Source: Trichosphaerium sp. ATCC 40318 (lineage: Eukaryota > Protista > Tubulinea). Taken from it: a stretch of DNA of 64,000 bases. Below the pieces are notes generated by a model. It ran no database searches. It had not been told where the DNA came from and was given only the letters and a program-made list of their open reading frames with translations. The number at the start of each line of letters is the position of its first letter. Position 1 is the stretch's first letter. This document shows, piece by piece, positions 5,958 through 61,588 of the stretch. The position numbers and the translations under genes were made by a program. The stretch lies in the NCBI GenBank assembly GCA_038496445.1, contig JALMLS010000276.1, positions 1 through 64,000 on the forward strand, given 5' to 3'.

Positions 5958-7183
5958 TTACATTCTTAATCCAAGGTATTTGTATCCTTCTTCTGTGACT
6001 TTAGTTCTTTTAGCATACAGTTTTTCAATACCAATAAGCGGCTTAATACCCTCATCTGAAACATTTGAGCATCCTGATATACATAGATGCTTAACACCAA
6101 TAAGCTTAGAAACACCAATATCAGTAACATATTGACAAAAAGCAATATCGATTCTAGTAGCACCAGCAATAGCCTCAAGTCCTTTGTCTCTTATATAAGT
6201 ACTGCTCGCTAAAACAATACTGGCACCCTTTAAAGCACAAAAACCTTTATCTGTTATACGACTACACCCAGTTATATCTATTTTATAGACACCTGAGAGA
6301 TGACAAATACCTTCATCTGTAATATTTTTACATCTTGATAAATCTATTGTATGTACGCCAGATATCCATTCAAAATATATTCCTTTTATATTATGACACC
6401 AAGATAGATTCAAGTTTTTTACACCTGTAAAAGACTTTATATCCTCATCTTTTATTTGATCACAACCACAAAGATCTATTGTATGTATACCACCAAGTGA
6501 TTTTATAATATCATTTGATAACTTAGAATAAGTTATCTTTATTCTATGTGGTGGCTTAACCATTATTTCTCGAATTGCTTCAAGAGTAAGTGTATCACAA
6601 TGGCTTATTTCTAGATCATGAACACCTGATAATACGCCAATATCATTACCAAGTTTTCTTCCTTTTAACCGAACAGTTGGTATACCAGCTAATGCTTTTA
6701 TACCTTCTATAGTAATCTTTCTTATGTTGTCTAAAGTTATGCTTTTTAACCCCTTTAATGACTTTAATCCTTCATCTGTTATACGTGAGTGACCATGTAG
6801 ACCTAGGTATCTTACTCTTTGATGTGATAGAGCCTTTAAATCATCGTCTGTGAATGGCTTTTCTTCAAAAGTGAAAACTTCAACTCTTGTATGTTTGATT
6901 ACTTTTGACTTTTCGAACAGACGTTGTAGTTCTTCTCTTGATTGTATAAGAACTTTATAAGGTCCTATATGGTTTTCTATTACTTCACGCATCAGTTTAC
7001 ACGTCAGGATAGCGTTAAGACGTGAGTGGTTCAGCGTTAGAATGTGCGCTAATATTTCGTTTGGAAGGTCCAGAATATTACTAACAAGCAGTTCACTAGC
7101 ATATAACGTTAGATTGTGGCTTTTAGACAGTCTTGTTATGAATAGGCGCTTGAGATTCGTTTAACATACCTCAATTTGTCCAT
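5958..7183 (-). CDS. F-box/LRR protein copy 1 (intact)
   Basis: Exon 1 MDKL(S) 7170-7183 and intron 7120-7169. These are followed by the F-box ILDLPNEILAHIL and tandem LRRs of type GVHTIDLSxCxxITDEG. Confidence 0.9.
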
Positions 7184-7687: not shown

Positions 7688-9326
7688 ATGGCTTCCTCTG
7701 AATCCTTTTTGGAGCGTTATTTGGCAAAAGCAAAGGCGTTTGGCGAAGAATATAGTACATACGCACGCTTCGACGATGACAGAGAGGTTCGTACTTGTTT
7801 TTGGGGAAAAAAACGGCATTGCTGTTGATTGTCTTACTCTGTTAGCCTGATGCGCCAATTGGAGATTTAATGTATCCAGAGCTTGATGTACCCTTAGATA
7901 ATGAAGGATACTGCGTTAGTTGGCCAAGTAACAAGGAGAAGGAGATTAAGCAGTTTTTTTCTAAATACGGGTTTGTTGTTGTACGCAATGTACTCACAGA
8001 ACAGGAGGTATGAAGGAAAAAAAGTTTTTTGCCGTTTCAGAAAAGCTGTCGCCATTTTTTCTCAAAAACAAAAAGCAAAAAAACTGACGAGAAAAAGGTC
8101 TCAAACAGTGTCTCAGACATTTGGACACAACTCGAGACTGGAAAGTTTGATCAACCTACTGAGCTTGATATTAAAATAAACAGAAATGATCCATCCACGT
8201 GGGGTATAGAGTCCGGATGGCCTGCTTTCTTTACAAACTTGGTATGGTTCTCTTTAAAAACGTGTTTTTTTCATTAACCTTTGGTGGTTTTTTAGGGTTT
8301 TTTGGGACAACCAAGGACGAAACAACTGTGGATGAATCGTGTTAATGAGAACATATATAACTCGTTTAAAACTGTTATTGGTAATCCGAATTTATGGGTT
8401 GCTATAGAGCAGATAGGAGCCATGAGACCAACAAAGGTAAACTTTTTAAATGACTAATAAATAACGTGTTTGTTTAAGGGAATTTCTGCGGTGCCTCTAG
8501 AACCCAATAATTCAAGAGTAAACGCTAGTCCTAAGATAGGAACAGGTGCTATTGATAAGAAAGACTGGGTGTCAACGAAAGGATCAGATTGGATACACTG
8601 GGATCTTAATCCTTGTACAAGTTTCAGCATTTTTTGTGTTTTGCTAACTCAAACAAAGGGAAATGGACGACAGGCCAAGGGATGGACTATGCGTTTACTG
8701 ACTTTTCTACTGAAAATAATGGAGTAAAAAAAGGAAAGTATGTAAAGGTGCAAGGAGTGTTAAACCTTGGTGCTTCTTCAAAAGATGATGGTGGCTTTTT
8801 TTGTGTACGAAAAATGAACTACCCTAAGAATACTTCAAGTGATCAATTGTTTTTAGGTACCAGGCTTTCAAAAATATGTTGCTGATTGGGCACAAAAAAC
8901 AAAACATACAAGAGCTTGTAAAAAGAAAGATGATATTCTAGACTTGGTTCATGTCCCTTTATGCACGTGATTTTTTTGTCATTATTCGAAATGTTATTTT
9001 TCTTTTTTTTTTCTCAAAGGAATTTTCTTGTTGTCTCCGCCCCGCCACTGTTCTATGATCGTTTAGTAATAGTTTGGTTAGGCGATAAGATTAGGAGCCA
9101 AGGTAAAAAGGTCCCAATGAGACCAGGGAGTTTATTAATATGGAACTCTGAACTGCCTCATGCTAATTATCCAAACAGCTCAAGTAATTTTCGTTTTGTT
9201 CAATACTTCAAAATGTTTGTTGCAAATCCGGATGCTAAAGGAGTTTCATACAGAAGGAACCTTATTAAAATGAACGTACCGAGAGGTATAGAATTAACTG
9301 ACTTGGGCAAAAAGTTATACGGCTAG
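7688..9326 (+). CDS. PhyH-like 2-oxoglutarate/Fe(II) dioxygenase
   Basis: Motifs FFSKYGFVVVRNVL, IHWD, VQGVLNL...DGGFFCVPGF and PGSLLIWNSELPHANYPNSS.FRFVQY. One GC-AG intron (donor 8963). Confidence 0.85.
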
Positions 9327-19184: not shown

Positions 19185-21310
19185 ATGGGAACTGCGCCGT
19201 CTAAAAAAAATAAAAAGAAGCCTTTAAAGAAGACAAACTCCTCTACTTCTGTGAGTAGACCGCCTAAACCGAATCCAAAGGGAGGAAATGGGTACAAAAA
19301 GCCAAATGGAAGAAAGAAACAGCAATCAAGCAAAGATCTTAGCTCGAGGCAGTCAACGAAGTATGAGTCGAAAAAAAGGCAATAGGGTTAATTTAATATT
19401 TTACTGATTGCTTTAGCAGTACTAAAAGCAAGGTACAAGAAGAAACACGACATACACCCTCACGACAACACTAAACCGCTATTTTTAATCATTACAAAAA
19501 AAAACCACCAACGACAGAACCCAAAAACCATATTTCGTTTTATAAAACAATTTCCGACGTACGTAAACACATACTGAATAGCGTCATAGGAAGGAGACGG
19601 TTTCTCGAACAAAAAAGTGGAGAAGCTTTATGAAAAGTACGCTAGCATAGTAGGTACGTTCCAAAAGACACTGCTTGTACATAAAATCAAAAAACGTAAA
19701 TGTCAAGCTTGTATTTAAACGCAAAACCGAAAAAAAACACACCACCTAAACCAACATTAGACCCAGACGAGGATGAGGAGGAATCTACAGATCCTGATGA
19801 GATTGGCCCTGCTGGTGTTGAACAATTTTTATCTGACGCCGGTATTGATGCAGAGGGCGTGTTATCCTTTGTATTGGCGTGGCATTTATCAGCCAAGGAA
19901 ATTGGCTACTTTCAAAAGGAAGATTTCATTGCTGGCATGAAAAAATTAGGGTACGCGTCGAACACACTTGATGCAACAATCAAACTTATGACGTTGCTTC
20001 AAGTAATTATTTTTTACGTTTTTATTTTCTTGTGTTGCATCTTTTTGAGATCAAAGCAATGTCACCGTATACAAGACTAAATAACTGTTGTTGTTGCAGT
20101 GCTTTCAATGCTTTTAGTTCTTTTGGAAGGCTTTTTTTTGAAGTTAAAGTTGGGCTTCGTTATTTTTTTATTTTAGGGTTGCTGACGTTGATTATTAGGT
20201 GTGATACCATGGATAAATTGAAGAATAAAAAGGATCAATTTGAGAAGGAGATTAAAAATGAAGAAACATTTAAAGCGATATATAGATTCGCTTTTCACTT
20301 TTCAAAGGCTGATAAAGATAAACGTCAAATGGGTACAAAATTGTTTTTTTTTTTTTTCAATTTGTTTTTACCCATCTAATTTCGCGCTCGACGCAACACG
20401 CGAATCGCCTGTTCGTAAAACGTGGCCTGTCGTCTGCTCTTTTTTTTTTTTTTTTTGTCGTCTGCTCTTTTTTTTTTTTTTTTTGAATTCCACCTCTTTT
20501 TGTATCAGTTTATAAACCATGCGATACTACTATATTTCACAGTTACCTACGTGGTATTAAATCATTTTGTATTTTCAAATAATTTGATGGTTGTTGTATC
20601 TACGCGTCGTGGCGCGTAGTGGTATCTTCGTATTTTTTTTTTCTCGTAAAGAAACGCTCAAGTAAAAATTTTCCGGACAATTATAACCCAAACAAATCCT
20701 TTCTAACATCTTATTTGATAAATAGAGGAATTTTTTTTGATATCTTCGTGTAAGTAACTTTGAATAGACTTTTTAACAGCAGATTGCGTCTTGGAGTTAC
20801 TACTGGATGGTCGGCCACACGTGGAACGTTTTAGAAAATTCATACATGTAGTACGTAAAAAGATATTGCGAATTTTTTGTCTTTTTGGGTTTTTTTTTGT
20901 ACTAAGTTTTTCTCTTTAGCAAACAGCATACCCTGGTCTTAATCAGGATCAATGGATGTCATTTTTAGATTTTTCAAAGACCATCAATGAGGATTTTGAG
21001 AATTACGACGCTAGTGGCGCATGTAAGTGCACGAGATTATTTTTTCTTTGTTTTCTGTATTTTATTAATTTATTTGTTTGTTTTATTATGTCTGCCTTTG
21101 TCTTTGTCTTACTTCTTTCTTGTTTTACTATTTAATATACTAGAAGCTAAATATTATAGGGCCTGTTTTACTGGATGAGTATGGTGAGTGGGTTCAGGAT
21201 GGCATGCCCGAGAAAAAAGACGATAAGGTAAGTTGTATTTACATATTTTGATCTTATGTTAATCGGGTTATTTTCTGTAAAAGGATGACGATGATGAGGA
21301 TGAAATGTAA
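19185..21310 (+). CDS. DCN1-like cullin neddylation E3 (PONY domain) with putative myristoylated, polybasic N-terminus
   Basis: Motifs IGPAGVEQFLSDAGID...VLAWHLSAKEIGYF, FKAIYRFAFHFSK, LNQDQWMSFLDFS and NYDASGAWPVLLDEYGEW. Start MGTAPSKKNKKK. Confidence 0.9.
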
Positions 21311-21686
21311 GGTAATACGATGAATATTGGTTTGGCATGGAAGTTTTAAAAGCATTTTTGAATCTTGGTTTGCTATATTCATTGAATAAATGTACAAAAA
21401 TAAAAATCACCTAAATTTATTCGTGGTTGTTACAATATTCTACCCAAGTACTATTTGTTGACCACCTAAAAATATATATATATACGTCTTATCCATTTAA
21501 GTGTAGGAACATAAGAAACAGAGTACCAGCAATGATAAGGCAGGGAGATAGTCAAGTTGTTCTTTTTGGTTTCGTTTGTCGATAGTACGATGATGTTTGT
21601 TTACTATAAAAGCGTAACACGTGCAATTAAAAAAATAACGTGTGAGTACCCTTGTTTTTTAAGATTCACGTTTGAACGAGGCATCT

Positions 21687-21990
21687 ATGGAGCACGCTAC
21701 AGTTATTTTTATTGTCGTTGTATTTACACTTATTGATTGCATCATATGTGATGTCACTCAATGTAATTTTGACGATATAAGAGCCCAGTGCGAGTACGTG
21801 GTTTAGATTGGTTAAAAAAATATCTATAGATATACCTAGTGCAATTGACATGCTAATTTTATTTGTAACATAAAGATGTGGATGTAGACGATATTACGAG
21901 GAATGTGTTATGGGATTACATGGCCCATATAAGATATGTTCCAGTAGAATATATTGGACGTGTGTAGGAGGATGCAGGACTCTCAGATAG
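21687..21990 (+). CDS. Small secreted Cys-rich peptide (~73 aa, 2 exons)
   Basis: MEHATVIFIVVVFTLIDCIIC-DVTQCNFDDIRAQCE|CGCRRYYEECVMGLHGPYKICSSRIYWTCVGGCRTLR*. Intron 21794-21875 keeps frame and AATAAA follows. Confidence 0.65.
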
Positions 21991-22096
21991 TCATAGTATT
22001 ACTTCAATAAAAACAATCTTTTTTTTCATATTTACATCTTTTTGCACGTGAATTTTCTCATCAAGTCTTTTTTTTTTTTGCCCTAATAAACTCATA

Positions 22097-23027
22097 ATGG
22101 CGAAACAACAACACCGGCATGAAAATATTGCTAAATTTAAGAGCGATGTCTCAAAATTTTTTTTTTAACCTGAAATAGGCGTTATCTTGATGCCATCGCT
22201 TCATTGTAGTTCCAGGAGGTTTAACAAGAGCCATAGACTGTAGTAGCTTCGTGTCATCACCAAGAAGCTCATTAGCATAGCTCAAGAGTGATTTATGCTT
22301 AGAAAGTTCTTTAAAGTATTCGTTGTGTACACCTAGTCTGAAATAACGCCGGACACGCATTTCCAAGTCACCATCAACACGTGTTTTGACAAGAGATTGA
22401 TTTCTTCTTTAGACTATCACCAAATGACGTTATGGCGTTTTGGATAGCACTTGATCCTTGTGATGTAAAAAATGGGTGTATGCACGTTGTACCTGGGACT
22501 CATGTTGATGGTAGAACATGTTGTGAACAAAAAAGATCGTATCTTTAAAGGAGCACTTAGGTATCGTGGATCATGCTATACCTGAGTCTATTGCTGCGTC
22601 TGAAAGCAACAGACACATATTTTATTCTCTTACAAAATGGCCTAATCCAGAGAAAGTTGTTCCAGTCCCTCTAAACCCTGGTACTGCATGATGAATGCTT
22701 TGTTCAATATTTTTCTCAATATTAGTTCTAGGCGATGCATTGGTATTTCATGGCGAACTTTTTCACGTGAGCGTTCATAACCTTTAATTAGCTAAGGCTT
22801 GTATATTAGTTTACGCCCCCAAATACATCAGACAGGAAGAGGCGTGCACTACAGTTTCATTACGCGTCATCAAAGGCACCATTCTTAAAACATTTTTTTG
22901 TTTGATCTAAAAATAAAATTAGTGCAAAGTCAGCGTTCCAACTCCTTATTGGCCATACCGTGAAGCGGAGATATTAACATCTGGGAAGGACTATAGATTA
23001 ACGGAAAAAGATTCAGCGTTCGTATGA
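22097..23027 (+). pseudogene. PhyH-like dioxygenase disrupted by an internal inversion (22147-22379)
   Basis: Plus-strand start MAKQQHRHENIAKFKSD. The middle exon ...LLQSMALVKPPGTTMKRWHQDNAYFR lies on the minus strand (22170-22379). Plus-strand exons from 22413 read LSPNDVMAFWIALD...NGCMHVVPGTH...PGDALVFHGELFHFTPPNTSDRKRRALQFHY. Confidence 0.88.
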
Positions 23028-23311
23028 CCACAAGTGCGGAGTCTTTCGGGGATTAGAAGAACAAATCAATCCCACTCTGTGTCTTTTGTGGTTCGCGCAA
23101 AAACACGCTATTTCTGCCTTGAATTATATTAGACACAAGGTTCATAATAAATATGTGTAAAGGCCAATCACACAACCAGATCTTGACGTACTTGCCTCTT
23201 AGCTTGTTTATAGTCTGTTCGTTACAATCACGTTTTTTATGAGCAACGAAATTTACTATACGCTTAAAGGCGTTGACCCGAGATTGTTTTTCTTTTTTTC
23301 TTTAGAGGTAC

Positions 23312-26300
23312 ATGGTCAGCCAGCGTATGGATAAACCAATATTGGCTGTATGCAGTGGTGGTAAGATTAAACAATAAATCACGTTTATTTAGTCATAAAA
23401 ACCTTACTGAATTACCTAACACGTGATATAATATGTATAAGATAACTAACCGTTTTGATTGCCTTTAGACTTTGACCAGAATACTGGGTATGGTATCAAC
23501 CATTTTTATCCTAAGAAGCTTAAATTTGAGGATATAAAAGAAAGACTTGCTGCGCTGTACGTCGAACCATCGATCTTGAATTAATTAAAAAGAATTATTA
23601 TTCTGTGGCTTGCGTTAAAGTTTCTTTAAACGATCACGTTTTTTTCTATTCAAAATCACGTGGTTAAAGTAGATAAACCTTAAAAAGCAAATATGAGATT
23701 TCTTTTTTTTTTTTTTTTTTCAATTACAAATCGGCGAATCTCTTGATTGTATGGTCACGTGACGCGGTGTAGGTGCTTTACAGACGGCTGCCATAATTTT
23801 GATTGCGAAAGCGTTTACTTTACATGTGAAGGGGAGATACGTTTGAAGAGGCAAACAGTAGATAAGATTTACGGCGTTAGTCTCTTTAGGTAAGACTAAA
23901 TTACTACAAACTAAAAAACTACGTTCGACTCGCGGTTATTTGTGAGTTATCATTTGCCAAAAATTGATATTTGAATAGACAAGGTGATGATAAATCAAGC
24001 AAACGAGGAGCTGTACAAGCTGCAGTAATTGCGTTGAGGTGAACATTAATTACTTTTTTTTTCAAATTTTCTTGCGAAAAAGATTTTTCTTTCATTAACA
24101 CTTTGTTAAGTACATCTCCCGATTATCTGTCATTTTATCAGCACGTCATGGGTACACATATTTTTCACCACCTGCGAATGATTTTTTTGGGCGCGTATGT
24201 ACCTAACAGGAAATCTAGACCACTATCTTCAACAGAACTTATTTTTATTCATGGCAAAGAACAAAAAACGAAGAAAGAACCAAGGCAAGATTAACAAATT
24301 GCTTCAAACAGTATACACCGTGATCAACAATTCAGTCGAAGTACACATAAAAAAACAAACCTGAAGTATATGACAAGCTCTTAACGCCTTTTAAAATAGG
24401 GAAAAAGCCTTGTGGACTCTGTCATGCTGAATTCCAAGACGATTTATGATCATAGATATTTTGATCAGTCTCCTCTTAGTGGTCACTCCATAGCAAAACT
24501 AGTCGCTGATTTTGGACGCGAAGCAATGAAAGTACGTCATTCTACAGAATTTTTTTCAGTGCACGTGACTAAATATTCTAGTTGTGGTATGCGCTTATTT
24601 TAGATCACAGGTACGTTTTTTTGTTTGAAAAAAATTTTAACAATTTGGCCCTTTACTCCCGAAGTGTTTATTATTCTACAAAAGGGTTTTAATTACGGCC
24701 AAACGAGCGAGTGATTCTTCCAGACTAGCTATGGCTACACCATTAATCGTACAACCGTTAGATATTACTCATCGACTAAGGTAACCAAAAACCCCAAAAC
24801 ATCTTTTATTTTAAGCTAACTGTGGTGACTTTTTTACCAGGCCACACGCAACTGTACATGATCTTGATATGGCTCTAAACGAACCTTGTGTTGTCGGTAC
24901 CAATCATCCCCTATTTATGAATGCAACAGGTACAACTTTAGTACAAATTCTCTTTTCAATTAATTTTGTTACAAAAGATGACTGGGATACAATTTTTCAC
25001 TTTGATGGACGGCGTGTGATTTGTAAACAATTCGGAGTACCAAATTTCAAGTTATCTGGTAAACAAAAGAAGATACTGGTACGTATAACTTCGAGTCGAG
25101 CAAAGAAAAACAAAAAGTTTTGGAAAAAGAAAAAAGTACTTAATCTAACTTTTTGTTAAGCTGTCTTTCACAAACGCCTTACAAAGCCATGACTGCGAAA
25201 TTTGGTGCGTCCACACTACTGTTAAATCATGAGATTATCTTATACTTTACCAGGTTGCGTAAACAGTTCAGAAACCTTACAACTCGGTTTTTATACAAAG
25301 TCCAAACAGCAACACTTGGAACAAGAAAATCAATCGTTTTTGCAGGATGGAAGTCTTCGGCATTGTATAGAACATATATCGCTAAACATGGAAAGGTATC
25401 CTACGCACCTGACCCACCTACTGGTAGAAAGTACGCCACAAAAAAAAATATAGTCGTTTAGATTTTTGTGTCTCACAGGTTATTGCTTTAAAAAAACAGA
25501 GACAGTATAATCGGAAAAATGACACAACGTTTATCAGTAAGACGAAAGTCAAGCTCTGTGCCTCATTTGTATTTCATTAAACAAACGAAGAGCCAGGCTT
25601 CTGATGATAGTAGTAATAATAATAGTGAAAAAACGTCAGTCCCATCATAATTAGCTTTGGTACCTATTAGTAATAACTTTGCTAACTTTTTCTTTTTTAA
25701 AACAGACCTCCTGAAATTGGACCTGCACCAACTACAAAATCAAAAAGACGTAGATTCTCTTCTCCTTCTCCAAAGAGAGTATCGAGTAATAGCAAGGTAA
25801 GTGCATACTTAGAAACAAAGCAAAATCACTCTGTTCTTCAGAATTTTAACTTCAAAAAACTTATCACGTGATTTTTTTTTCACAAAATTTTCACACGTGA
25901 TTCACTCAAAACGTGGTTATAACGTGCGCAAGCACCCTTGAGATTTTTACCAAGGGTTTTTTATTATTATCACGTGATTTGATTGTTTGTAATTTATTTT
26001 CTTAGTTGGAGAAGAAGGGACATAAAAAACGTGGATCTATTGGAGATTACGCCAGCTTAAAGGTCAAAAGACGTGACAGTGTTATAAGCAACTCATCAGC
26101 AAAATCAAACAGATCACGTATGTCTTCAAGATCAAAGAGATCCAGACGTTCAAGTAGATCAAAGAGGTCAAGACGTTCAACTACTAGTACTAGATCAAGA
26201 AGCAGATCACGAAGAGATAAATCGATTGAAGGTGACTTACAGGCATTGAGTCGCCGTAAGCTAAAGAAAACAACAAGTATGAACCTTGTAGTTCCTTCTA

Positions 26301-45195: not shown

Positions 45196-46597
45196 ATGCT
45201 TGGTGCAGAAACGGAGTACGTTTTTACCGTGGAACGAAATGGTTCAATTTTAACATATTAACGAACTCTTTTATCTAATTGTTGTAATAAGGCCATTGGA
45301 ATTGCTGTATCTGCCTACAGAAATTATATTTTGTATTCTGGCGTTTTTGGACAAGAAATGCCGTGTATCTGCAACGTTTGTATGTAAACTGTTTTCTACA
45401 ATCATTTTAGAGCATTTGGGGTATAAAGCGGTTACAGTAAAGTCTAAAAAGAATCTACACAAACTATGTGGAAGCCCTCTTTTAAAAAATACAAAAGTAT
45501 TTATTTCCGACATTTCTATGACTGATGATGACTTCAAAAACGTCTCTGGTGTTAATCACCTTGAAATAAATAGTAACTTGTCAGTAACAGATACCATGTT
45601 GGAGCATATATCAGGTGTACATCACCTGAAACTAAATGTACAATCGGTTAAAGTTGAATGCAATTTTACATGTCTTGGATTTAAATCACTTCGTGGTGTT
45701 CATACACTACTACTATCAGGATTCAAGTTAAAAGATGAATGGCTTCAAGGACTTGGTGGTGTCCACACAATTGATGTTTCACGTACAGGTATAACAGATA
45801 AAGGACTTGCAGCCCTCTCTGGAGTTCATACTATTAATTTGGATTATTGTTACGATTTCACTGATGAAGGTGTTGCCAGTTTAGGTAATGTACACAAGAT
45901 ACAGTTTACCTATAGTAGTATTACAGATAAAAGTGTAAAATCACTAACAAATGCAAGTGAAATAGCCCTTTGCAGTTGTTACAACATTACAGATGAAGGA
46001 GTAAAGTATCTACTAACACAAAATCAAAAAACAAACAAGATTAAAAAAATTAGTATTGAATGTTGCTCACGCTTATCAAACAATGTGTTTAAACTTCTTG
46101 CTGGTATACCTTGGATAGAGTTGTATGGTTCTGTACAACTAAAAGATGATACCTTATCATGTTTGGTAGGAGTACAACATATTGACTTGGGTGGATGTAA
46201 ATCTGTAACAAATGATGGGATAAAACAATTGGCAGGTGTAAAAGCAATTGGTCTTGCAAATCTTGATTGTGTTGATGACAGTACCTTGAAGGTACTTGCT
46301 GGAGTACATTCAATATTTCTTGGAGAGACATCTGTGACAGATAAGGGTTTAGGCTACTTAGTTGGTGTTAAAGTAATAGAACTTGCGGAATGTGAGCTCA
46401 TTACTGACAAAGGAGTGAACAGACTTATTGGTGTTAAGAAACTTGATCTAGAAGGCTGCAAGCAAATAACAGATGATGGAGTTGGTAATTTAACAAGCCT
46501 TGATGTAATTAACATTGTTGATACTCAAATAACACAACAAATGGTTGATTATCTAGGATGCACGTGCAGTGATGAATACATGTGGCCAACATTTTAA
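45196..46597 (+). CDS. F-box/LRR copy 5 (intact)
   Basis: Exon 1 MLGAET(E) 45196-45215 and phase-2 intron 45216-45291. Then F-box LLYLPTEIIFCIL, linker SPLLKNT and the LRR array. Confidence 0.9.
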
Positions 46598-51867: not shown

Positions 51868-52701
51868 TCAAAACCATTTTATACCCAATGCCTCAACATT
51901 TTTCCTTGTAATCTGATTGCAACCTACAGCTTTAAGTGATTTGAGTGATATCATGTACTGCAAACAACGATATGTTATCTTAGCGCAGCTGTCTAAGTCC
52001 ATATGCTGAAGATTTATCAAATGCTTAACACCTGAGTCTGTTATTGTATCACAATGATACAAACGTAAATGCTTGACATTGATCAATGATTTAATTCCAT
52101 CATCTGTTACTGAGTACCCACCATAAATAGTAACAGTATGTACATTCCCAAGATGTTTGAGCCAAGATTCTCTTGGGTCGCTGAGTGATATATTATGAGC
52201 ATCTTTAAGTGCCTTTATTCCTTCAATAGTAATATTGCAACTATACAGATTAATTGTGTGTACACCTCTGAGTGCAATCAATGAAACATCTGTTATATCT
52301 GTCGATGCTAAGTTAATGGTGTGAATGGTGTGCTTTCCTTCTTGTATTAATGCAAGAATACAATCATCTGTGATGTTTGTAAAAGATAAATCTATGTTTT
52401 GAACACCAGAAAGATAACTCAACTCATCACGTGATAGATTCCAAAAACTACAATCAATGGTCGTGTTTTTCAATAGTGGACTACTTCTAAGTGTTGGCAA
52501 ATCTGATGCACTTGCTGAGAGTCGATGAAAGCCAATATTGTTGCGAATGATGTTGTTAAATGTGTGGGAAACCGCAGACGCAATAATACGATACGCTCTG
52601 TGTAAATAATGTAGAATATGCGTTAACATCTCCGGTGGTAATTCTTCCAACGATTTCTCTTGGTTTACTTTAATAAAGCTCTGTTTCTGTGCTCTAGACA
52701 T
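51868..52701 (-). CDS. F-box/LRR copy 7 (intact, intronless)
   Basis: F-box LEELPPEMLTHILHYL, linker SPLLKNT and LRRs. Confidence 0.9.
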   Translation of the reverse strand: MSRAQKQSFIKVNQEKSLEELPPEMLTHILHYLHRAYRIIASAVSHTFNNIIRNNIGFHRLSASASDLPTLRSSPLLKNTTIDCSFWNLSRDELSYLSGVQNIDLSFTNITDDCILALIQEGKHTIHTINLASTDITDVSLIALRGVHTINLYSCNITIEGIKALKDAHNISLSDPRESWLKHLGNVHTVTIYGGYSVTDDGIKSLINVKHLRLYHCDTITDSGVKHLINLQHMDLDSCAKITYRCLQYMISLKSLKAVGCNQITRKNVEALGIKWF

Positions 52702-60521: not shown

Positions 60522-60700
60522 TATTGGTGTTTAAGACAACGGATATAATGTGATACTAACCATCCTAGTAATTGGCCGTATCCTCTGAAATAAGGCGCCT
60601 ACCCAGTATACAAATAACATTTCTGAAGCTAAACAACAAATTTCGCTGGTAAAAAGTCAGCTGAGGTCAGTACGACTTGCCAACTGGACGAAACAGCACC

Positions 60701-61588
60701 ATGTCCACTAACAATACCATACATTCACTTTGTGATGTTCCACCAGAGATATTGACACTTGTACTACGATATTTAGACAAAACACAGCGTATTACTGCTA
60801 CAACAGTTTCTCATCGTTTTAATGACATCATTCGACATAATCTGGGATTCATGATGATAATCCTAAAAGAAAACTCAGATTGCGCTGTTCTGAAAGGAAG
60901 CCCTCTGCTTAAAAACACACGTATTGTATCTACTAGGTTAAATCTATCAGATAAAGACTTGAGTTGTCTCAGAGGGGTTCATACAATAACACTAGCAACA
61001 GGATGTATTGGTGACTCGGGTATTAAGGCATTGTTGGAGGGAGAAATGACTCCTCCTTATGACATCACCTTGCATTACTTAGACATAACAGAAGTATCTC
61101 TAAAGGCTCTCAAAGGTGTACATAAAATACATATTCAGTACTGTAAATTCATTTCAGATTCCGGACTTAAAGAACTCAGAGATGTCCATACTGTTAGCTT
61201 ATACTATCCAAAAATAGATGAATCTATTAATGTACTTGTTAATGTGAACACACTTATTATCAAACAAGGAACCAACTTAACAGATGATGCATTCAAAGGA
61301 TTGACTAATTTAAAACATTTGAACCTAACAGATTGCCGTGGCGTAACAGATAATGGGTTTAAGGATTTGGTGAGTCTAGAAAGTCTAGTACTTAAAGATT
61401 GTCGAAGAGTTACAAATGATTTTTTGAAGCACTTGAAGTCTCTCAAAGAAATCAAAGTAAACAATTGTGAGTGTATTACACGTGATGCTATTAAGTCGTT
61501 GGGTATACCCTTTGCTTATAAAGGATCACTCATTGCATGGTTGAGGCGCTATAGCAAAGGACATAGTGGCATGAACAATGTTAAGTAA
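60701..61588 (+). CDS. F-box/LRR copy 9 (intact, intronless)
   Basis: ATG 60701, F-box LCDVPPEILTLVLRYL, linker GSPLLKNT and LRRs. Confidence 0.9.
   Translation: MSTNNTIHSLCDVPPEILTLVLRYLDKTQRITATTVSHRFNDIIRHNLGFMMIILKENSDCAVLKGSPLLKNTRIVSTRLNLSDKDLSCLRGVHTITLATGCIGDSGIKALLEGEMTPPYDITLHYLDITEVSLKALKGVHKIHIQYCKFISDSGLKELRDVHTVSLYYPKIDESINVLVNVNTLIIKQGTNLTDDAFKGLTNLKHLNLTDCRGVTDNGFKDLVSLESLVLKDCRRVTNDFLKHLKSLKEIKVNNCECITRDAIKSLGIPFAYKGSLIAWLRRYSKGHSGMNNVK

Follow-up and report, generated by a model that had tools for sequence, protein, structure and literature searches.

An intact mRNA and a compound deletion-inversion in the assembled copy of a PhyH-family dioxygenase gene

The stretch of DNA analysed here (64 kb, referred to below as the window) holds a gene for a PhyH-family Fe(II)/2-oxoglutarate dioxygenase in which the exon with the iron-binding HxD motif is assembled backwards, and its mRNA, recovered from public libraries, is intact. 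The locus would be the native locus of this expressed gene, and the assembled copy would carry one compound lesion, in which exon 1 would have lost about 144 bp and the adjoining 233 bp, comprising the remainder of that exon with its HxD motif and the first 23 nt of intron 1, would have been reinserted inverted. Our preferred reading, to which we give a probability of roughly 45%, is that this compound deletion-inversion is a real and recent null allele or subclonal variant. Its most likely origin would be one event, either breakage and end-joining or replicative template switching, with three break points within about 380 bp and with new junctions that each have 0-2 nt of microhomology. The outcome would be a null copy and irreversible, and the mRNA in the public libraries would then come from an intact copy, whether that is the other allele or belongs to a different genome in the culture.

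The results showed that the WHQD exon runs on the minus strand from 22378 to 22170, and that the start codon and the later exons lie on the plus strand. The gene is preceded on the plus strand by a promoter-like region at 22040-22096, with a CACGTG at 22045-22050 and a T-tract at 22066-22079 that ends 18 nt before the ATG; this region is outside the cover of the RNA contigs and is called promoter-like from its likeness to the layout of the neighbouring gene, in which a T-tract ends 15 nt before the ATG at 23312 and the transcript 5′ end is placed at 23304 by a SMART adapter in library X1. The T-tract-before-ATG layout is common to 23278-23312 and 22066-22099, with a spacing of 15-18 nt. The start codon and first 17 codons (MAKQQHRHENIAKFKSD; 22097-22147, plus strand), likewise outside the RNA contigs, end just at the point where an invariant G[YF] motif of the family would be expected to begin. 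As assembled, the ATG at 22097 opens an ORF of only 23 codons (22097-22168), as the reading made from the letters of the window (the sequence-only reading) had reported. At junction A (22146-22149) the native 5′ coding end meets the 5′ part of intron 1 in reverse complement, and the approximately 144 nt of coding sequence would be missing there; on the assumption that the intron of the flip model is the native intron, the position of this junction is ambiguous by 2 nt (TG). Next come, both on the minus strand, the inverted 5′ part of intron 1 (22147-22169), with its GT donor at 22169-22168 and with the RNA contig leaving the exon at 22170, and the inverted exon piece of 209 nt (22170-22378), which reads VDGDLEMRVRRYF...KRWHQDNAYF and bears the His and Asp of the HxD motif. 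Minus-strand coding is open over 22151-22378 and runs through this piece up to the GT, in agreement with the earlier placement of the HQD exon and its donor. Junction B (22377-22380), where the 5′ end of the exon piece abuts the 3′ part of the same intron, lies inside ACACGTGT. The 3′ part of intron 1 (22379-22412, plus strand) has a polypyrimidine tract and an AG acceptor at 22411-22412, and the RNA enters exon 2 at 22413.

The remaining exons are all on the plus strand and from 22413 give the rest of the PhyH protein (LSPNDVMAFWIALDP...HVVPGTH, GDALVFHGELFH, RRALQFHY). Exon 2 (LSPNDVMAFWIALDPCDVKNGCMHVVPGTH) occupies 22413-22503, as placed by arithmetic on the contig positions, and is followed by an intron at 22504-22553 and by exon 3 at 22554-22680, for which RNA pieces cover 22560-22679 with a spacing of 97 nt in both contigs; the contig arithmetic thus moves the start of exon 3 from the earlier estimate of 22551 to 22554. 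Exon 4 (22732-22766), which encodes GDALVFHGELFH, bears the distal iron-binding His, and exon 5 (FTPPNTSDRKRRALQFHYASSK; 22810-22875) bears the 2-oxoglutarate-binding Arg region. A GC-AG intron (GCACC...TTAG; 22876-22922) was placed by position arithmetic on two cDNA contigs. The last coding exon and 3′ UTR extend over 22923-23160, with the stop codon TGA at 23025-23027 and with RNA from three libraries (X1, 22921-23160; X2, 22921-23095; X3, 22921-23107). Reverse-complementing 22147-22379 was recomputed and gives a single open frame from the ATG into the HQD exon together with a 56-nt GT..AG intron that ends at 22412 in matching phase, just as had been proposed.

Assignment to the PhyH family (Pfam PF05721) rests on exon 2, which scores 34.3 bits against a cut-off of 22, and on the HQD exon, which reaches 17.8 bits on its own and 103.9 bits against an HMM of 124 homologues gathered by an exhaustive profile search and a word-based search. 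The HxD...H triad and the 2-oxoglutarate Arg, represented by WHQD, FHGELFH and RRALQFHY, align on conserved columns of the homologues, the HxD being on the strand opposite to the remaining motifs. The window lacks the N-terminal segment led by G[YF], the G of which all 124 homologues share. Human PHYHD1 and PHYH and the bacterial PhyH hydroxylases (PDB 2opw, 2a1x, 4mhr) are alike in having the PF05721 domain, the HxD...H triad and the C-terminal Arg region, and the closest full-length relative of the window protein, P0084, matches PHYHD1 (2opw) with E = 7.7e-18 and PHYH (2a1x) with E = 1.5e-16. In contrast to these enzymes, the best public relatives of the window protein come from transcript contigs of uncultured eukaryotes and are 52-62% identical: P0084 (277 aa) shows 62%, P0081 (280 aa) 56% and P0083 (291 aa) 52% identity to the partial protein. 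P0001 and P0081-P0084 all derive from environmental data of JGI and Logan, where they lie on short transcript-like contigs, and sequences annotated as Gemmatimonadetes or Planctomycetes come next, at about 47% identity. Judged from these similarities, the window dioxygenase is a predicted member of a protist PhyH clade without a characterised member.

Ten public runs were found, each at no more than 0.28 of the sampled words, and the contigs of four of them were placed on 19800-25200. These four are cDNA-like, in that their contigs are spliced and a SMART template-switch adapter is present in X1 at 23304. Two contigs, X1 record 2 (908 nt) and X2 record 5 (777 nt), each join the minus-strand HQD piece to the plus-strand exons within one molecule: one piece, 22172- or 22170-22378, matches one strand of the window, and the pieces 22560-22679 and 22921-23160 or 22921-23095 match the other. 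The three pieces of X2 have no mismatch to the window and those of X1 one differing letter, and the inverted exon piece itself has none in either contig. The splice from 22170 to 22413, reading YF(R)-LSPND, is confirmed by the RNA contigs, so the YFR-LSP junction that the sequence-only reading had proposed to look for is present in both X1 and X2; the spacing within the contigs leaves exactly the room needed for exon 2, for exon 3 starting at 22554, for exons 4 and 5 and for the GC-AG intron. The PhyH mRNA from the two libraries is collinear and intact. Upstream of 22378 the contigs run on for 142 nt (X1) and 76 nt (X2) in sequence foreign to the window. This extension amounts to at least 47 upstream codons, the last 10 of which are readable (30 nt) and give VISIDPDMEE in frame, followed by VDGDLEMR. 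The FKSD-VDGD junction expected from a simple flip is therefore not the one expressed; the real mRNA reads ...DPDMEE-VDGD.

Where, then, does the missing 5′ sequence belong? The VISIDPD of the extension aligns on P-[IV]-x-[VL]-DP, a motif conserved in the family, and the distance from the G[YF] motif to that point is exactly 48 residues in each of the three closest homologues (P0084, P0081 and P0083). The ...AKFKSD that ends the 17 codons after the ATG at 22097 sits just before the expected G[YF]; by a PSSM that covers, for 122 homologues, the 10 residues ahead of G[YF], HENIAKFKSD falls in the top 1.1% of the 73,661 ten-residue stretches of the window, and it has an F at -4 (F or Y in 119 of the 122 homologues) and a D at -1. 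Since these 17 codons fit the pre-G[YF] profile and, once the segment is flipped, share the frame of the HQD exon, the ATG at 22097 and the codons that follow look like the native N-terminus. Comparison with the homologues thus puts the loss from exon 1 at about 144 nt, that is, the 48 codons from G[YF] to ...DPDMEE, a size that is estimated from the homologues with 30 of the 142 extension bases readable. A deletion of the G[YF]-led stretch at the left junction had been suspected, and alignment to homologues proposed as the way to size it; both were borne out, about 48 codons being absent from the window and present in the mRNA. Because the missing piece would be a whole number of codons, the flipped segment comes out in frame. 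The 142-nt extension of X1 comes near the predicted 144-nt gap, and the stop of the X1 contig could be a graph branch made by a transcribed rearranged allele, although the k-mer arithmetic for such a stop fits imperfectly.

The readable 30 nt are absent from the 64-kb window at up to 3 mismatches, as are their 12-16-mers at up to 1 mismatch, and when the missing 5′ piece was sought in the window by tblastn and with an HMM made from homologue N-termini, the sole match was another PhyH-like gene at about 7846-9323. This second PhyH-family gene (7846-9323, plus strand) is distinct and does not supply the lost piece; it has an N-terminal ...FFSKYGFVVVRNVLTEQEV piece at 7945-8010 and a C-terminal piece at 8934-9323 that scores 22.1 bits with Pfam PhyH. 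No protein or locus of the same species was found in public representative, homologue, exact-product (for the neighbouring ORFs) or metagenome collections; the best match of the representative search was 57% over 54 residues, besides three short partial fragments at 68-81%.

Since the mRNA has 144 nt that the window DNA lacks, an intact DNA copy must exist elsewhere. Such a template outside the window is also what would be required if the PhyH locus were an older pseudogene and the mRNA came from a paralogue, intact and very recently duplicated, at another place in the genome. We consider this explanation unlikely. The promoter-like region, the start codon, the 3′ UTR and both neighbouring genes are all in place at the PhyH locus, and if promoter and start are native, the locus is unlikely to be a stray partial duplicate. 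Further, the RNA matches over more than 560 nt including UTR with 0-1 mismatches, so that the duplication would have to be extremely recent, and a second copy was not found in the 64 kb.

The anatomy of the lesion follows from a comparison of the two orders. The native order would be the start piece, the missing piece of about 144 nt, a segment H (209 nt of exon and about 23 nt of intron) and the rest; the assembled order is the start piece, the reverse complement of H and the rest. Immediately 5′ of 22378 the mRNA and the minus strand of the window already differ, and an AG is lacking at that place, which makes 22378 a DNA breakpoint and not a splice site. Trans-splicing was rejected on the same two grounds, the lack of an AG beside 22378 and the divergence of the mRNA at the very next base. 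So was a simple inversion within the window, whatever its size, since the ...GGAAGAA end of the missing piece is not found on the plus strand leftward. The segment 22147-22379 had been described as inverted, and so it is, except at its right end, where collinearity with the RNA stops at 22378 and base 22379 differs. If the intron of the flip model is native, both new junctions fall, to within 2 nt, on one intron position, and each is ambiguous by about 2 nt. No flanking inverted repeats were found around the 233-bp segment, the inverted identity of its ends being 2-3 nt only. The TGT...ACA bounds, which the sequence-only reading had named, come to just 3 nt and are expected by chance at about 1/64. 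Nor is the palindrome special to the right junction: the CACGTG within it is present in 70 copies across the window, compared with an expectation of 9.8 +/- 2.9 from shuffles, an enrichment of about sevenfold, and its role as a special breakpoint or recombination signal was rejected because it is too common. Among the nine copies of CACGTG in the RNA-annotated interval 19800-25200, five are in introns and two in intergenic or promoter DNA; copies are found, for example, at 22045, 22378, 23420, 23657, 23756 and 24562. CACGTG looks like a genome-wide non-coding motif, maybe an E-box/G-box-type site.

These results bear on the proposal, made in the sequence-only reading, of a reversible ON/OFF switch that works by inverting the 233-bp segment within the gene. 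The flip does yield an open frame and a normal 56-nt intron, and the collinear orientation does exist in the RNA, so that the restoration of frame and intron stands; the restoration of the expressed gene does not, because the 144 nt cannot return by inversion. The flipped form is without the 48 conserved codons that are found in the real mRNA, and an ON state is thus impossible from the DNA of the window. Invertible switches such as Hin/Gin, fim and the shufflons also have a short segment in the 'wrong' orientation in or beside a gene, but unlike them the PhyH locus has no inverted-repeat sites, and a Pfam test of the nine largest ORFs in the window revealed no recombinase. With the palindrome being a common motif and the ends sharing only 2-3 nt, we regard such a switch as extremely improbable.

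An alternative that does not depend on reversal is programmed rearrangement, according to which the window would be germline-like and scrambled and the expressed gene would be built at the DNA level, as in the scrambled genes of ciliates. It is true that the order in the mRNA differs from that in the DNA, that one piece is inverted and one missing from the 64 kb, and that there are short identities at the junctions. A ciliate-type gene has all its segments in the locus with matching pointers between them; here the 144-nt piece was not found in the 64 kb, and 'pointers' of 2-3 nt are no longer than chance would give. Neither the genetic code, which is the standard one, nor the GT-AG introns, which are ordinary ones of 43-56 nt, is ciliate-like; the neighbouring genes are collinear with their own mRNAs across at least 15 introns, the missing piece is just 144 nt of one exon, and eliminated sequence between the pieces is not evident. 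We therefore hold this explanation to be very unlikely, and programmed and reversible rearrangement, even when taken together, have only a slim chance of being correct. A broader idea is that the genome contains many precise micro-inversions within genes, either resolved at the DNA level ahead of expression, which would be programmed unscrambling outside the ciliates, or tolerated as widespread heterozygous products of shattering and repair; the PhyH locus would be one instance, with its 144-nt piece stored elsewhere. This we find very doubtful.

Of the options listed in the sequence-only reading, two are left: the pseudogenisation of one copy, by template switching or breakage, and an amplification or assembly chimera. 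According to the latter, the genome would hold only the intact collinear gene, and a chimeric molecule, produced for example by strand-displacement template switching in whole-genome amplification, would have been fixed in the consensus. We see this as a real possibility, somewhat short of probable. Chimeras formed in multiple displacement amplification (MDA) are inverted sequences with intervening deletions in more than 85% of cases, and more than 70% of their junctions have 2-21 nt of complementarity (PMC1855051); the PhyH lesion, with its inversion, its adjacent deletion of 144 nt and its roughly 2 nt per junction, shows this pattern, which is not specific to MDA. The RNA shows the intact form only, no read or contig with junction A or junction B being found in the four cDNA-like runs examined, and the rest of the sequence is the same as the mRNA. 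This last point is shared by both explanations: because the remaining sequence matches the mRNA with 0-1 differing letters, the lesion is very recent, if it is real at all, and a conserved, expressed gene free of secondary decay is also what an artefact would be expected to look like. The two differ in how they account for the junctions. While the phi29 chimeras described by Lasken and Stockwell (2007, PMC1855051) are alike in inverted sequence, intervening deletion and short junction complementarity, a chimera at the PhyH locus would require two consecutive and independent polymerase switches that return exactly to the origin, landing on the same intron position within 2 nt; under breakage and rejoining, the placing of both junctions at one native position is an automatic result. 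Foldbacks and inverted duplications are absent from the window, the F-box paralogues excepted. In addition, the base-for-base agreement of the assembly with the RNA over the covered exons (0-1 differences) argues against a low-coverage consensus and suggests good coverage, which should outvote a rare chimeric read.

Several ORFs of the window encode F-box plus leucine-rich-repeat proteins (5958-6992, 45296-46597, 51868-52701 and 60677-61588), and near-identical blocks are common to 32.6, 49.6, 52.1 and 61.0 kb.

For the reading as a real null allele, the reciprocity of the junctions and the accuracy of the assembly against the RNA are joined by a hint of two alleles in the sample. Position 24874 is C in X1 and T in X2, which are libraries of the same sample, and the contigs of X1 and X5 stop 36 nt away, as at an unresolved heterozygous bubble; this suggests two alleles. 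On these grounds the lesion would be present in the cells and would have arisen by the single event described above.

Either way the lesion is of an ordinary class, being a small deletion-inversion variant or an amplification chimera, and nothing at the PhyH locus points to a new regulatory mechanism. Small deletion-inversion variants made by end-joining or by replicative template switching (FoSTeS/MMBIR, or the short template switches modelled by Loytynoja and Goldman, PMC5453318) likewise consist of a few hundred bp inverted in place, an adjacent deletion and 0-2 nt of microhomology, with no flanking repeats. The PhyH lesion differs from them in that its junctions share one native position, which fits breakage and rejoining better than two free switches. 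For quality control of assemblies, the locus offers a clean test case of heterozygote versus artefact, since the rearranged and intact forms differ by about 144 bp and in orientation. For annotation, the PhyH gene should be taken neither as a pseudogene of the species nor as a gene that mere flipping would 'repair'. An intact enzyme of the PhyH family is expressed in the organism, and the 5′ third of it is partly missing from the assembly.
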